The translations under genes and the position numbers were made by a program. A DNA stretch of 5,371 nt, taken from assembly GCA_001179505.1 (NCBI GenBank), contig CDMY01001041.1, positions 1 through 5,371 of the forward strand. Reading direction: 5' to 3'. This document shows, piece by piece, positions 1-5,371 of this stretch; position 1 is the first letter of the stretch, and the number at the start of each line of letters is the position of its first letter. The notes beneath the pieces are model-generated. The model was not told the origin of the DNA, did no database searches, and was given only the letters and a program-made list of their open reading frames with translations. The stretch comes from Vitrella brassicaformis CCMP3155. Its lineage: Eukaryota > Protista > Chromerida.

Positions 1-1282
1 CTTCCCACTTCAGGTAAAAATCACGTGCCGTCCCTCATTGCAGCACTTCTTAGACAGAATTGCTTGTGTGTTTTCTCAGGAGCTCAACGAAATGGGAGCG
101 GATTATCAGCGGGGCGAGGGCGACCTGAGCTTCGAGAGGCGGAACGAGGCGTACCTTCAGTATGCTCCTGGTTTGGCAGTGGCTGCGGCGTCGAAGGCGT
201 TGTCTGACTGGGGTGGTCGTGCGAGCGACATAACCCACGTCATCGGCGTGACGTGCACGGGTCTGATAGTGCCGGGTATCGAGTACCACGTGATCCAAGG
301 GCTCGGTTTGCCGCTGACGACGCAGCGTCTGTCGATCACGCTGATGGGGTGCTTCGGAGGGTGCAGTGGCCTCAAGGCCGCCGCCGCCATTGCGGCTCAG
401 TCGTCGTCGCATCGTGTGCTGGTGGTGTGCTGTGAGCTGTGCACCATCTCGAGCGCCATGGCGACCGAGGTGCACACGGACCAGCTGATCGCCAGCATGC
501 TCTTCGGCGATGGAGCCAGCGCCATTGTGGTGGGATCGGGCATCAGAGCTTGTTCAACGACAGGCTCGAACGACATGAGCAGCAGCAACGAGTACAGCTA
601 CACTGAGCGGCCCATCTATGAGTTCCTCAAGAGCGGCTCGTGCATCATCCCCAACACCCTCCACATGATGGGCTGGGACCTCAGCACCAACGGATGGGAG
701 ATCACCTTGAGCCAGGACATCACACGACAGCTCGGCGACACCATCTGCAGCTTCACCGACACACTCGTCCGCGACGCCCTGGCGCCAAACAACACCTCTG
801 GTGGTCCCACATCATCATCGCAGCAGCAGCAGCAGCCACAACAGCAACACGAGACGACCAGTGGCGGGGCCGCTGGTGCTGGTGATTCGGATCAACCCCA
901 AGCTGCTGGCGGTGCAGCACCACGGTGTCCATCTGCAGCATTGCCGAGCTACAGTGACATGATGTGGCCTCTTCACCCTGGCGGCATGGCCATCATCGAG
1001 GCCATCGAGGTGGCTTGCGGCCTTGACCCCGACTTCCACACCAAGAGCACCCGCCACGTCCTCAAGCAAGTGGGCAACATGTCCAGCGGCACCGTCTACT
1101 TCGTCCTTGACGAACTACGCAAGATGCCCAGAGACAAACTCAAACCATACGCTATGATGTAAGCCACAATCCTTGACTGCACAGCACAGTGAGACTCATT
1201 CTCGGTCTGTTGCTTGTCGCTTGCCTCCAGGGCCTCGTTCGGTCCCGGTCTCACCACCGAAGGAAACCTCCTGAGGATCTGC
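1..1282 (+). CDS. Type III PKS domain A (N-terminus upstream of the window), catalytic triad intact
   Basis: Cys in LMGCFGGC (codon 350-352), His in WPLHPGG (974-976), Asn in VGNMSS (1076-1078). Also LFGDGA and, after splicing, ASFGPGLTTEGNLLRIC. Confidence 0.93.
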
Positions 1283-4200
1283 AACGTTGGTCAAGGACCC
1301 GAGATGGCCATTCCTCGGCCGCTCAGCTTACCGCCTCTTGCCGTGCCCCGGAGGCTTGGGACAGGAACCAACGCACGAGGGGAGAGGGCCACTCCTTACA
1401 TCTTCGGGATAGGCACAGCTAATCCCGAGAATGTCATACCAACCATGGAGGCTGCTGAGGGCTTGGTCGGCTACTATCAAGGCAGGATGGATGAGAGGGA
1501 AGCCAGGCGACTCCGTCGGATCGCCAAGACTTGCGGCATCGATCAGAGGCGGAGTGTCTTCCCACTTCAGGTAAAAATCACGTGCCGTCCCTCATTGCAG
1601 CACTTCTTAGACAGAATTGCTTGTGTGTTTTCTCAGGAGCTCAACGAAATGGGAGCGGATTATCAGCGGGGCGAGGGCGACCTGAGCTTCGAGAGGCGGA
1701 ACGAGGCGTACCTTCAGTATGCTCCTGGTTTGGCAGTGGCTGCGGCGTCGAAGGCGTTGTCTGACTGGGGTGGTCGTGCGAGCGACATAACCCACGTCAT
1801 CGGCGTGACGTGCANNNNNNNNNNNNNNNNNNNNNNNNNNNNNNNNNNNNNNNNNNNNNNNNNNNNNNNNNNNNNNNNNNNNNNNNNNNNNNNNNNNNNN
1901 NNNNNNNNNNNNNNNNNNNNNNNNNNNNNNNNNNNNNNNNNNNNNNNNNNNNNNNNNNNNNNNNNNNNNNNNNNNNNNNNNNNNNNNNNNNNNNNNNNNN
2001 NNNNNNNNNNNNNNNNNNNNNNNNNNNNNNNNNNNNNNNNNNNNNNNNNNNNNNNNNNNNNNNNNNNNNNNNNNNNNNNNNNNNNNNNNNNNNNNNNNNN
2101 NNNNNNNNNNNNNNGCCACGTCCTCAAGCAAGTGGGCAACATGTCCAGCGGCACCGTCTACTTCGTCCTTGACGAACTACGCAAGATGCCCAGAGACAAA
2201 CTCAAACCATACGCTATGATGTAAGCCACAATCCTTAACCGCACAGCACAGTGAGACTCATTCTCGGTGTGTTCCTTGTCGCTTGCCTCCAGGGCCTCGT
2301 TCGGTCCCGGTCTCACCACCGAAGGAAACCTCCTGAGGATCTGCGAGTGCGATGCCAATCCAGCAGGGGCTCGTTTCCCCGCAGCATCTGGGTTGTGCGA
2401 GTCGGACGAACAGCCTGATTCACCCAATGGCAAGATCGACAGGATACCAGATCCCTGTATCAACGAGTCGATCGGGAAGATCCTCGGCTTCCCTGTTGCT
2501 GAGCTGACAAGGGCAGCTACGGGCTTCCCTGTTGCTGAGCTGACAAGGGCACCTACGTTGCGGACTCTCAGACGGCCACCTCCCCTCACTCTTCCTCCCC
2601 CTCGGAAGGACGGCGTGGGTCCTCACCCATCGTGCATGTTCCGCTCCATGCGGTCGTTCATTCTGGGCATCGGTACTGCTGTTCCGTCGACATGTTTGAA
2701 GACCTCAGATGTTGAGTCGCTCGTCCTGGCCCTCAGCCCTGAGGGTCTGAGTGGCTTTGAGATCGTGAGGAGCAAGTTTGTGGCGCGGACGTGCGGGGTC
2801 GACCAAAAGTGGAGCGCCATTACACCACAGGTGAGATGAAGAAGGGACGAATATGAATGACACAATTTCATTTCCCCATTTGTGGTTGTCTGCTCTCCTA
2901 TTCTTTCGCATGATCCGATCAGGACATTGTCAACTTCAAGAATGGTGCAAGCTCGAGCTCGACCGACAGAAAGAACGGCTTTGAGCTGAGGAACGACATA
3001 TTCTGCCGACAGGCTCCTACGCTCGCGGCATTGGCTGCCGAGAAAGCCATCCAGGAGTGGGGCGGTCCGAAGGATGAAATCACTCACATCGTTGGTATCA
3101 CAAGCACGGGAATGGCGGTGCCTGGGATCGAGTTCCACGTCATCAGCAAGCTGGGCCTGCCCCGGACCACACAGCGGGTGTCCGTGACCCTCATGGGGTC
3201 CAACGGGGCGGGGGCTGGCTTGAAGCTTGCAGCAGCCTTCGCGATGCAGAGCTCCCAGTCCAGAGTGCTGGTGGTTTGCTGTGACATGCCGCTTGTGGCT
3301 GCGGCTGGCGTCGGCGACCTGCGAGCAAACGAGGCCCTCATCCCACTTTACGGTGACGGGGCGTCTGCGGTGGTGATCGGATCCACGCTGCGGTCAAGTG
3401 AGAGTGCTCTGTACGAGTACCTGGCCGGTCGGTCCGAGATCCTGCCGAACACCGACGACCTCGAGTCGTTTACCTGCAGCAAGGAAGGCGTTGAGATCTC
3501 TTTCAGTGCCGACATCCCCCGCAGGATCTGCCACAAGATCCCCGACTTCGTAGACAACCTGTCGATGGCGGCCTTTGGTCAACACATCCCCTTCGATCAG
3601 ATGCTCTGGCCGGTCCACCCAACAGCCCTCCCCTACATCAGCATGTTCGAGGAGGCATGCGCTCTCGACCCGGATCTCAGCACCATGGCTTCGCGGGAGT
3701 GTCTGCGAAAATTCGGCAACATGTATGGGGCGTCCCTCTTCTTCGTCCTCGACGATCTGAGGAGGCGGCCACCGACAGTCGAGTGTGCAGTGACGGCGTC
3801 GATAGCGCCAGGGCTCGCGATGGAGGGTGACATCTTCAAGATCTGCCACGGAGACGGCGAAATGGACACTGCAGAGGGGGTCGTCAGAAGGATTCTGGAA
3901 CAAAGGGACGAACACATGCCATCGCATTTCCCTCTGCCCCCCGCCGTCCCAATGCGCTACACTCTCGAGAATCCGCACATTCTCGGCATCGGGACGGCGA
4001 ATCCCGAGAATGCGATCCCGACTCTTGAGGCGGCAGATGGGATGATCAACTTCTACCGCGAGAGCATCACGGAGAAGGAGGCCAGGCGACTCCGTCGGAT
4101 CGCCAGGACCTGCGGCATCGATCAGAGGCGGAGTGTCGTCACGCTCGAGGTCAGCAACAAAAGACGCTGCCCAAGCCACGCACCGTATCTTCATTGTCAT

Positions 4201-5371
4201 TGGTTGCTTCATGTGTGTAGGAGCTGAATGCACTGGGCGAGGAGCTGAAGCGCGGCGAGGTTGACCTGAGCTTCGAGACTCGGAACGACCTCTATCGTCA
4301 GTACGCTCCTGGTTTGGCAGTGGCTGCGGCGTCGAAGGCGTTGTCTGACTGGGGTGGTCGAGCGAGCGACATAACCCACGTCATCGGCGTGACGTGCACG
4401 GGTCTGATAGTGCCGGGTATCGAGTACCACGTGATCCAAGGGCTCGGTTTGCCGCTGACGACGCAGCGTCTGTCGATCACGCTGATGGGGTGCTTCGGAG
4501 GGTGCAGTGGCCTCAAGGCCGCCGCCGCCATTGCGGCTCAGTCGTCGTCGCATCGTGTGCTGGTGGTGTGCTGTGAGCTGTGCACCATCTCGAGCGCCAT
4601 GGCGACCGAGGTGCACACGGACCAGCTGATCGCCAGCATGCTCTTCGGCGATGGAGCCAGCGCCATTGTGGTGGGATCGGGCATCAGAGCTTGTTCAACG
4701 ACAGGCTCGAACGACATGAGCAGCAGCAACGAGTACAGCTACACTGAGCGGCCCATCTATGAGTTCCTCAAGAGCGGCTCGTGCATCATCCCCAACACCC
4801 TCCACATGATGGGCTGGGACCTCAGCACCAACGGATGGGAGATCACCTTGAGCCAGGACATCACACGACAGCTCGGCGACACCATCTGCAGCTTCACCGA
4901 CACACTCGTCCGCGACGCCCTGGCGCCAAACAACACCTCTGGTGGTCCCACATCATCATCGCAGCAGCAGCAGCAGCCACAACAGCAACACGAGACGACC
5001 AGTGGCGGGGCCGCTGGTGCTGGTGATTCGGATCAACCCCAAGCTGCTGGCGGTGCAGCACCACGGTGTCCAGCTGCAGCATTGCCGAGCTACAGTGACA
5101 TGATGTGGCCTCTTCACCCTGGCGGCATGGCCATCATCGAGGCCATCGAGGTGGCTTGCGGCCTTGACCCCGACTTCCACACCAAGAGCACCCGCCACGT
5201 CCTCAAGCAAGTGGGAAACATGTCCAGCGGCACCGTCTACTTCGTCCTTGACGAACTACGCAAGATGCCCAGAGACAAACTCAAACCATACGCTATGATG
5301 TAAGTGACAGACTGTTATAGCAATGGCCTGCAATCCCTCTCAATACATCCTTTTCCTGTGTGGCTCAGGGC
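1..5371 (+). CDS. Partial spliced CDS, open at both ends: multi-domain tandem type III PKS (chalcone synthase-like) protein. Exons: <1-13, 80-1158, 1231-1570, 1637-2220 (contains gap), 2293-2830, 2923-4149, 4221-5299, 5369->5371
   Basis: Manual splicing at GT-AG sites joins the ORFs 38..1162, 1214..2224, 2267..2839, 3031..4227 and 4314..5303 into one stop-free frame. This is about 1620 codons counting the N gap, or about 1785 if the gap hides a full A-like core. Splicing restores split CHS motifs, e.g. KPYAM-M-ASFGPGLTTE (CHS GFGPGLTxE). CHS motifs recur up to four times: ILGIGTANP, LMGCxGG, LFGDGA, HPGG, GNMSS, FGPG. Confidence 0.9.
14..79 (+). other. Spliceosomal intron, 66 nt, phase 0
   Basis: CAG|GTAAAA ... 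GTGTTTTCTCAG|GAG. Same position as the stop-containing or frame-breaking introns 2831-2922 and 4150-4220. Confidence 0.8.
821..835 (+). repeat. (CAG)5 coding microsatellite, short polyQ; second copy at 4962-4976
   Basis: CAGCAGCAGCAGCAG within SSSQQQQQPQQQH. Confidence 0.85.
1159..1230 (+). other. Spliceosomal intron, 72 nt, phase 2
   Basis: AT|GTAAGC ... TTGCCTCCAG|G. Contains the in-frame TAA; removal gives YAMMASFGPG. Confidence 0.93.
1397..2344 (+). CDS. Type III PKS domain B, tandem copy of A; core hidden by the assembly gap
   Basis: Starts YIFGIGTANPEN and ends GNMSS...FGPGLTTEGNLLRIC (Asn codon 2138-2140). Visible coding sequence that overlaps A is identical to A. The Cys and His codons fall in the N run and cannot be verified. 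Confidence 0.8.
1558..1814 (+). repeat. Exact direct repeat of 1-257 (period 1557 nt)
   Basis: Base-by-base comparison found no mismatch over 257 nt, including the 66-nt intron. Confidence 0.97.
1571..1636 (+). other. Spliceosomal intron, 66 nt, phase 0 (identical to 14-79)
   Basis: Same sequence and same homologous position as intron 14-79. Confidence 0.8.
1815..2114. other. Assembly gap (300 N)
   Basis: Run of N. The flanks correspond to A positions 257 and 1053, so a full A-like copy would need 795 nt here. Confidence 0.98.
2115..2344 (+). repeat. Direct repeat of 1053-1282
   Basis: 230 nt with 4 mismatches, all inside the intron (1175/2237, 1178/2240, 1207/2269, 1212/2274). The sequences diverge right after the LLRIC codons. 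Confidence 0.95.
2221..2292 (+). other. Spliceosomal intron, 72 nt, phase 2
   Basis: AT|GTAAGC ... CCTCCAG|G. Four substitutions relative to 1159-1230. Confidence 0.93.
2486..2557 (+). repeat. In-frame 36-nt tandem duplication (2 copies) in the B-C linker
   Basis: GGCTTCCCTGTTGCTGAGCTGACAAGGGCA(G/C)CTACG twice; encodes GFPVAELTRAAT then GFPVAELTRAPT. Confidence 0.95.
2657..3846 (+). CDS. Divergent type III PKS domain C with catalytic Cys replaced by Ser (putative pseudo-enzyme or decarboxylase-only domain)
   Basis: FILGIGTAVP start. LMGSNGAG with Ser codon TCC at 3199-3201, LYGDGA, WPVHPTA (His 3616-3618), FGNMYGAS (Asn 3718-3720), SIAPGLAME. The frame is uninterrupted after removing intron 2831-2922. 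Confidence 0.9.
2831..2922 (+). other. Spliceosomal intron, 92 nt, phase 0
   Basis: CAG|GTGAGA ... pyrimidine tract ... GATCAG|GAC. AT-richer than the exons and contains stops. Removal joins SAITPQ to DIVNFK and into the 3031 ORF frame. Confidence 0.88.
3976..5371 (+). CDS. Type III PKS domain D, catalytic triad intact, C-terminus runs off the window
   Basis: HILGIGTANPEN start. Cys 4491-4493, His 5115-5117, Asn 5217-5219. The last exon begins at 5369 with the same G-GC as the FGPG exons of A and B. Confidence 0.93.
4150..4220 (+). other. Spliceosomal intron, 71 nt, phase 0
   Basis: GAG|GTCAGC ... GTGTGTAG|GAG. Removal joins RRSVVTLE to ELNALGEE, matching RRSVFPLQ|ELNEMGAD in B. Confidence 0.92.
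4305..5304 (+). repeat. Direct repeat of 164-1163
   Basis: 1000 nt with 3 mismatches: 220/4361 (silent), 932/5073 (Ser/Ala), 1075/5216 (silent). Confidence 0.95.
5300..5368 (+). other. Spliceosomal intron, 69 nt, phase 2
   Basis: AT|GTAAGT ... CTTTTCCTGTGTGGCTCAG|GGC. Same position as 1159-1230 but unrelated in sequence beyond GTAAG. Confidence 0.9.

Follow-up and report, generated by a model that had tools for sequence, protein, structure and literature searches.

Four type III polyketide synthase domains, one with serine at the catalytic cysteine position, in a single spliced frame of Vitrella brassicaformis

Can type III polyketide synthases (PKSs) be made as parts of one long chain, and what would such a chain be for? 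Enzymes of this kind are normally stand-alone homodimers (~40–45 kDa) and act as dimers. The question is raised by a locus of the chromerid Vitrella brassicaformis CCMP3155 (assembly GCA_001179505.1, contig CDMY01001041.1, positions 1 to 5,371); this whole stretch of 5,371 nucleotides (nt), eukaryotic DNA that is rich in GC (59%) and has short introns of the GT..AG type, is called the window below. A preliminary description, made from the letters alone, had proposed that at least four type III PKS domains are concatenated here in one polypeptide. We found that the proposal holds at the level of mRNA: spliced RNA crosses the linkers, and a metagenome contig keeps the same frame. The domains follow each other in the order A – linker 1 (38 amino acids, aa) – A' – linker 2 (104 aa) – C – linker 3 (43 aa) – A''. 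The linkers belong to the coding sequence, and the chain of several domains does exist as mRNA. As for the protein, we favour, with a probability of roughly 0.55, an intact chain that forms two pseudo-dimers, A.A' and C.A'', with unit C as a non-condensing partner.

The exon model consists of exons 2–13, 80–1158, 1231–1570 and 1637–1814, a run of N in the assembly, and exons 2115–2220, 2293–2830, 2923–4149, 4221–5299 and 5369 onwards; its seven introns (66, 72, 66, 72, 92, 71 and 69 nt) are all of the GT..AG type. The spliced model is stop-free over 536 aa to the left of the N gap and over 983 aa to the right of it. The frame is open at both ends of the window, and the gene extends past the window on both sides. 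At all three junctions the frame passes from ...GPGL...(R/K)IC through a linker into (Y/F/H)I(F/L)GIGTA. This model matches what the preliminary description had stated, namely one stop-free spliced frame through three linkers of 38–104 aa, with no stop codon or intergenic space between the domains. Two details have to be corrected: the FGPG motif said to end each domain is replaced in unit C by IAPG, and unit C is the only unit complete within the window. The Pfam scan proposed at that time found Chal_sti_synt_N and Chal_sti_synt_C together in each of the three long exons (A, C and A''), both above the gathering score, with 107.6–109.1 bits for the N-domain and 55.9–63.9 bits for the C-domain (cut-off 27). 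In the same scan of the window we saw no ketosynthase (KS), acyltransferase or acyl carrier protein (ACP) domain, i.e. none of the KS-AT-DH-ER-KR-ACP modules of type I, and neither a carrier nor a docking domain was detected in the linkers. The window's own annotated protein was not returned by a search with a Steely-like query (1365–4343 aa range) or by a single-domain search.

Evidence from RNA came from two sequencing runs, X8 and X10, which hold spliced contigs and thus are RNA runs. Every splice site of the model is backed by RNA contigs from these two runs. Splice joints were observed at 2827>2920, at 4147>4219 and at 1566>76 (equivalent to 1566>1633), while loose ends of RNA contigs give the junctions 1158/1231, 2220/2293 and 5299/5369. 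A single X8 contig of 1827 nt reads 3417–4147, then 4219–5300, then the next exon; it runs from the body of unit C across linker 3 (3847–3975, ..HFPLPPAVPMR..) into A''. Other RNA contigs join the FGPG exon, linker 1 and the N-terminal exon of A'; linker 1 (1283–1396, Pro-rich, ..RPLSLPPLAVPRR..) is covered by contigs 1231–1444 from X10 and 1253–1355 from X8. For linker 2 (2345–2656, with the motif RRPPPLTLPPPRK), RNA contigs 2315–2455, 2430–2593 and 2617–2827 give complete coverage except for 23 nt (2594–2616), and DNA contigs cover those bases unbroken. Matches to the window sequence in metagenomes come from reef, sediment and mat. In a sediment metatranscriptome (X20) we observed spliced transcripts of a close, slightly different relative, including part of unit C (2130–2222 and 3022–3392), so that the gene is expressed in nature.

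The linkers were further characterized by comparison with L001, a metagenome contig in ENA (3100 nt, 96% identical to the window). Spliced at the same sites, it yields 953 stop-free aa through linker 2, C, linker 3 and A''. Its introns differ from those of the window by indels of 8, 2, 4 and 4 nt, and the sole exon indel has 36 nt. This indel falls in a tandem repeat of linker 2 (2486–2521 and 2522–2557, units of 36 nt, 97% identical) that encodes GFPVAELTRA(A/P)T; L001 has one copy fewer, which makes an in-frame copy-number polymorphism of 12 codons. Two introns diverged by 11–14% and the third by only 3%, compared with 1–5% in most exon regions; the most diverged intron, 2221–2292 (14%), carries the 8-nt and 2-nt indels, while the N-terminal exon of A'' (8.6%) exceeds the other exon regions. 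The ratio of nonsynonymous to synonymous polymorphism (pN/pS) was 0.50 in linker 2 (17 differences), 0.29 in linker 3 (2 differences) and 0.23 in unit C. In a shuffling test, the linkers were all free of stops in 0.34% of trials; the test discriminates for linker 2 alone, since none of the three forward frames of linkers 1 and 3 contains a stop. Taken together, the frame conservation in L001, the RNA contigs and the shuffling result characterize the linkers as coding. In composition they differ from the domains, with GC at third codon positions (GC3) of 0.58–0.65 against 0.75. They share merely a loose PL.LPP..P(R/K)-like motif, and sequence comparison found no conserved short linker or cleavage motif common to all three. 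In linker 3, the linker contained in the largest single-exon piece, the AlphaFold2 confidence score (predicted local distance difference test, pLDDT) is 31–51, so this linker is predicted to be flexible.

The two kinds of unit differ at the catalytic site. The A units carry the full Cys-His-Asn triad, with catalytic Cys codons at 350–352 in unit A and at 4491–4493 in A''; they have HPGG and GNMSS motifs, an SFGPG loop and two lineage-specific low-complexity inserts, one of them Q-rich. In unit C the catalytic Cys position, which is Cys in at least 90% of homologues, is occupied by Ser (TCC, 3199–3201), with His and Asn retained. Other changes in unit C are HPGG to HPTA, GFGPG to SIAPG, and Tyr at the positions of Phe215 and Ser338 of chalcone synthase. 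Having neither a nucleophilic Cys nor a GFGPG loop, unit C is probably not competent in catalysis of the usual kind. The Ser was seen in the window, in L001, in DNA contigs and in RNA contigs; neither a sequencing mistake nor editing can thus account for it. The domain tree places A and C as sisters (SH-like approximate likelihood ratio test 98), and the branch of C (1.34) is longer than that of A (0.30). This placement together with the long C branch indicates that unit C, with its remodelled pocket, is a duplicate of an A-like unit of the same gene that arose within the lineage, evolved fast at first and later came under constraint. Indeed, purifying selection (pN/pS 0.23) and a confidently predicted fold (pLDDT >90 in the body of unit C, AlphaFold2) indicate that unit C is not decaying.

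The remaining parts of the gene, all on the plus strand, are arranged as follows. Of the N-terminal exon of unit A the window holds the last 12 nt (2–13, ..FPLQ), identical to 1559–1570. The following intron (14–79, 66 nt, GT..AG) is in frame and stop-free, yet it is removed in RNA, where X10 joins 1566 to 76. The unit A body exon (80–1158; Chal_sti_synt_N 8.6e-31, Chal_sti_synt_C 2.1e-17) is followed by a phase 2 intron (1159–1230, 72 nt), where contigs of both RNA runs have loose ends (1159 and 1231); since this intron contains an in-frame TAA, splicing is required there. By the exon model and residue map, the C-terminal strand of unit A (ASFGPGLTTEGNLLRIC) occupies 1231–1282. Beyond linker 1, the N-terminal exon part of A' (1397–1570, YIFGIGTA...) is represented in an X10 RNA contig by 1419–1566, spliced to the A body. 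Self-comparison identified the next intron (1571–1636, 66 nt) as a copy of 14–79. The body of A' is split by the N gap (1815–2114) into a left part, 1637–1814, which is 100% identical to 80–257, and a right part, 2115–2220, recognized by self-comparison; then come an intron (2221–2292, 72 nt, RNA loose ends at 2221 and 2293) and the C-terminal strand of A' (2293–2344).

To the right of linker 2 stands the N-terminal exon part of unit C (2657–2830, FILGIGTA...), placed by the exon model and residue map. It is separated by a GT..AG intron (2831–2922, 92 nt, joint 2827>2920 in X8) from the unit C body (2923–3846), which was delimited by Pfam, alignment to Steely1, the residue map and AlphaFold2. 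The N-terminal exon part of A'' (3976–4149, HILGIGTA...) is 76–80% identical in DNA to its A' counterpart. A GT..AG intron (4150–4220, 71 nt, joint 4147>4219 in X8 and X10) leads to the A'' body exon (4221–5299), also recognized by Pfam and by its similarity to unit A. In the last intron (5300–5368, 69 nt) the RNA past 5300 reads GCCTCGTTCGGTCC, i.e. the next exon, whose first bases, coding for the C-terminal strand of A'', are 5369–5371; the gene runs on beyond the window. An antisense open reading frame (ORF) of 279 aa (3394–4233, minus strand) faces unit C, linker 3 and A''; it is probably a by-product of high GC content.

We also observed an X10 RNA contig that fits the window from 3970 rightward and is preceded by 110 foreign bases ending in ..CAGATGGCGGGCACTGCATCC. 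This end is in frame and reads M-A-G-T-A-S before NPHILGIGTA. Positions 3968–3969 are AG, a possible acceptor, and DNA contigs of runs X1, X2 and X3 pass 3970 unbroken. A 21-mer from the foreign 5' part is absent from the window. The foreign part may be the N-terminal exon of unit A (a start with no presequence), an alternative 5' exon spliced at 3968–3969, or a paralogue.

How many copies of unit A are there, and what does the N gap conceal? The flanks of the N run correspond to unit A positions 257 and 1053, in the same codon phase. By this registration the gap hides ~795 nt (265 codons, A positions 258–1052) rather than 300, and the frame is kept. An X10 RNA contig of 1246 nt reads from an A'-type N-terminal exon across the splice into a complete A body and on into the following exon; L001 runs leftward from the equivalent of 2115 into A-body sequence. 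DNA contigs bridging the gap were present in none of the runs, where de Bruijn contigs collapse the repeat. Self-comparison gave 98.6% identity between A (108–1163) and A'' (4249–5304), while A' is identical to A over 257 nt (100%) and nearly so over 230 nt (98.3%). The three A copies have distinguishable downstream introns and are therefore distinct loci rather than one copy assembled thrice. The depth of DNA contigs over the A body is ~1.8–3 times that of C and linker 1, linker 1 being at single-copy depth; this agrees with a ratio of three A bodies to one C and makes a large hidden array unlikely.

Two further observations concern the assembly of the A units. Their Q-rich insert contains a CAG microsatellite (819–837 and 4958–4978), at which DNA contigs of run X1 branch into unrelated sequence; it is likely to be a trouble spot for assembly. 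At the end of the A' N-terminal exon and in its intron, an X1 contig of 226 nt carries three differing bases (1564, 1565 and 1596) at ~1.6 times single-copy depth, and X3 matches the window exactly; X1 bears the organism label of most other DNA runs. The X1 form may be a strain variant or a copy variant of the A/A' junction.

Is such an architecture known elsewhere? A search of 1.84 billion cluster representatives returned 3448 matches, and concatemers were sought in the best 150; as summed scores lift concatemers in the ranking, the best 150 should hold most of them. Four concatemer clusters were found among these 150 (P0014, P0097, P0085 and P0067). The first is the hypothetical protein KAK3233920.1 of Cymbomonas tetramitiformis (P0014), 4818 aa with 12 complete Chal_sti_synt N+C pairs, organized as six repeats of a two-domain unit (d1-d2) of 791 aa; its linkers are short inside d1-d2 pairs and longer and Pro/Ala-rich between pairs. 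Its gene (within LGRX02035604.1, 1–17607) is one uninterrupted, intron-less genomic ORF of 4868 codons that begins 104 nt downstream of the gene of a 6919-aa multimodular type I PKS, on the same strand. Compared with the Steely layout, the type III part is here separated from the type I part and multiplied. The Pyramimonas protein (P0097, MMETSP1081) has two type III domains, as does a protein from JGI records (P0085), a complete ORF of 879 aa on mRNA-like records with domains 12 aa apart and a predicted whole-chain structure that is a compact body (predicted template modelling score, pTM, 0.80). The fourth (P0067, 1145 aa, from an ENA metagenome contig of 7433 nt) has identical tandem domains at 297–677 and 692–1072 and belongs to a bacteria-like clade; it is possibly a third independent concatenation, or else an assembly duplication. 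A Musa protein (P0028) and several matches with three aligned stretches were rejected as concatemers, being fragmented single domains or probable merges of gene models.

In the domain tree the green-algal d1 and d2 domains form a separate clade (support 100), the Cymbomonas/Pyramimonas concatemer clade, which does not include the window domains; A and C of the window group with Rhodelphis and Steely-like sequences. Thus, concatenation in the green algae arose independently of the window gene. Unit A is most closely related to a Rhodelphis protein (47–53% identical) and to fused domains, in which a type III domain stands behind type I PKS modules or acyl-AMP-ligase-ACP modules. The single-domain search found no single-domain protein more than 50% identical to unit A, and a metagenome scan with unit C found relatives only 33–60% identical. 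Among solved structures the best match of both A and C is Steely1, 2H84 (2.3e-47 and 1.8e-39, respectively). The literature searched contained no account of a type III PKS built from several type III domains. A table in a review, whose column headers were not visible, gives 0 for Vitrella in the column presumed to be that of type III PKSs; one published tree includes a Vitrella homologue. It would nevertheless be wrong to believe that no such chain exists: databases contain uncharacterized proteins with 2 to 12 tandem type III domains from Cymbomonas, Pyramimonas and metagenomes. The architecture is rare, not unique: a known kind of enzyme in a layout undescribed in the literature searched.

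What would the chain do once translated? The mechanism that we favour starts from the habit of type III PKSs to act as dimers. The chain would stay uncut and fold into two covalently tethered pseudo-dimers, with short linkers within the pairs and the long, flexible Pro-rich linker between them. The pair A.A' would resemble a homodimer, while C.A'' would combine an active subunit with a non-condensing partner. An intact chain with such pairs is favoured by the short-long-short pattern of the linkers, the two-domain period of the Cymbomonas protein, the 12-aa gap between the domains of P0085 and its pTM of 0.80, the predicted flexibility of linker 3 and the Pro-rich, heterogeneous character of the linkers. 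On these grounds the suggestion of intramolecular dimers, made in the preliminary description, appears plausible; the structure prediction of a domain pair proposed along with it comes from the relative P0085, not from a pair of the window.

A unit that is conserved and yet has no nucleophile makes most sense as the obligate partner of an active unit. Unit C could be a structural or pocket-shaping partner of A'', or a malonyl-coenzyme A (CoA) decarboxylase. Cys mutants of chalcone synthase are known to retain decarboxylase activity, and in type II PKSs the ketosynthase works beside a chain-length factor (CLF) that lacks the Cys; the role of C would be comparable to that of the CLF. As relatives of unit A are fused to acyl-supplying modules and its best match is Steely1, the likely substrates would be fatty-acyl starters; one could speculate that the products are lipids of the alkylresorcinol, alkylpyrone or acylphloroglucinol type.

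The main rival of tethered pseudo-dimers is a cleaved polyprotein. One precursor would be cut by proteases in the linkers, the resulting ~45 kDa monomers would dimerise freely, C/A heterodimers included, and concatenation would be a dosage device as in the polyproteins of dinoflagellates and Euglena. We consider this reading, absent from the preliminary description, unlikely but next in probability. Alveolates offer a precedent of tandem stop-free units cleaved after translation (PMC11453091), and tandem units in one ORF without stops are what we see in the window and in L001. The A units, 98.6–100% identical in DNA, show the pattern of arrays homogenised by unequal crossing-over, and the linkers, with their lower GC3, are flexible and weakly constrained. 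However, the linkers are unequal in length (38, 104 and 43 aa), have no more than a loose Pro-rich motif in common and hold no stereotyped cleavage peptide; the ~12-aa linkers of the green-algal proteins appear packed in the model and would hardly be processable; and the possible start MAGTAS before NPHILGIGTA, seen in one RNA contig, would leave no room for a presequence. Less probable is an isoform locus, in which alternative first exons or exon skipping yield mono- or di-domain mRNAs and the four-domain chain is one of several products. It draws on the X10 contig with 110 other bases before 3970, in frame, and on the AG at 3968–3969. Nevertheless, that contig emerged only after the likeness threshold had been reduced to 90%, its depth is ~2.8 versus 6.2 for the form containing the linker, just 30 of its 110 foreign bases were seen, and it may come from a paralogue or represent the N-terminal exon of unit A, with which the gene would truly start.

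We regard as very improbable a type III assembly line, an idea of the preliminary description, in which the units would do successive different steps and pass the intermediate along. There are indeed two kinds of unit in a fixed order, kept in L001; yet three of the four units are near-identical (98.6–100%) and hence not specialised, the only divergent unit has no nucleophile, and the Pfam scan detected no carrier or docking domain in the linkers. In addition, type III PKSs use free CoA thioesters. Least probable of all is an artefact, i.e. a collapsed or mis-scaffolded array of separate genes read through by accident. The N gap does lie inside a repeat and is spanned by no contig, and the left contig starts and ends with the same 257 nt. 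Against this, in two independent runs spliced RNA contigs lead from body through linker to next unit at all three junctions, an independent metagenome assembly shows the same A'-C-A'' order in frame, the three A copies are told apart by their 3' introns, and neither a stop codon nor intergenic space separates the units.

Several considerations weigh against an intact chain of tethered pairs. Its integrity as a protein is a prediction from nucleotide sequence. The pairing of A with A' and of C with A'' is deduced from three linker lengths, and the P0085 model was judged by its pTM. The RNA contigs are repeat-collapsing de Bruijn assemblies, and no single molecule covering all four units was seen; the counts behind the pN/pS values are small. 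As the gene ends lie beyond the window, the number of domains could be odd or larger, and further domains (ACP, type I PKS) could sit upstream. Finally, near-identical units and the alveolate precedent fit the logic of dosage and polyproteins equally well.

The gene can be compared with several known systems. Like the window gene, Dictyostelium Steely1 and Steely2 have a type III domain within a large multi-domain chain, and Steely-like fusions are the nearest long relatives of unit A; a Steely protein, however, has a single type III domain after type I fatty acid synthase/PKS modules, compared with four type III domains in the window. The Cymbomonas, Pyramimonas and JGI proteins resemble the window gene in having complete N+C pairs (12, 2 and 2 per ORF) in near-identical repeat units, and the Cymbomonas protein shares with it a period of two domains in which short and long Pro-rich linkers alternate. 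Cys-His-Asn is retained in every Cymbomonas domain that was checked, and the gene is intron-less, whereas the window has introns and a Ser in unit C. In the KS-alpha/KS-beta pair of type II PKSs and in KSQ, a condensing enzyme works with a Cys-less homologue, the role proposed for C beside A''. These belong to another branch of the thiolase superfamily, with Cys replaced by Gln rather than by Ser, and they are separate proteins or type I domains, whereas the C.A'' heterodimer is a proposal only. In dinoflagellates, light-harvesting proteins and Rubisco II are encoded as tandem stop-free units that are cleaved post-translationally, and luciferase has three domains (PMC11453091). The window gene, also from an alveolate, shares with them tandem near-identical units with no intervening stops; but the dinoflagellate units are stereotyped, with a presequence and cleavage for plastid proteins, while the window has heterogeneous linkers and one diverged pseudo-enzyme.

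An RNA-supported natural chain of four type III PKS domains contrasts with the textbook picture of stand-alone homodimers. Together with the convergent chains of 2 to 12 domains in green algae, it means that evolution has repeatedly tethered type III PKSs. The conserved, embedded Cys-to-Ser unit C is the most interesting and testable feature of the gene. In its fullest form our interpretation is tentative, and we would rather doubt than assert it: the product, a ~200 kDa chain with two tethered dimers and a Cys-to-Ser pseudo-enzyme acting as a CLF-like or decarboxylase partner, would be the first covalent hetero-oligomer of type III PKSs known from nature, and its own products may be long-chain alkyl phenolic lipids, perhaps for a resistant wall. 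If this were true, C.A'' would correspond, among type III PKSs, to the KS/CLF pair of type II systems.

The gene thus offers a natural system for the effect of covalent (hetero)dimerisation on the specificity of type III PKSs, and templates for engineered single-chain heterodimeric enzymes. It asks whether a dead subunit can tune the pocket of its partner, and how tandem-unit genes of alveolates arise. For chromerids, which are photosynthetic and related to the apicomplexan parasites, it points to a pathway of polyketide lipids not recognised before.

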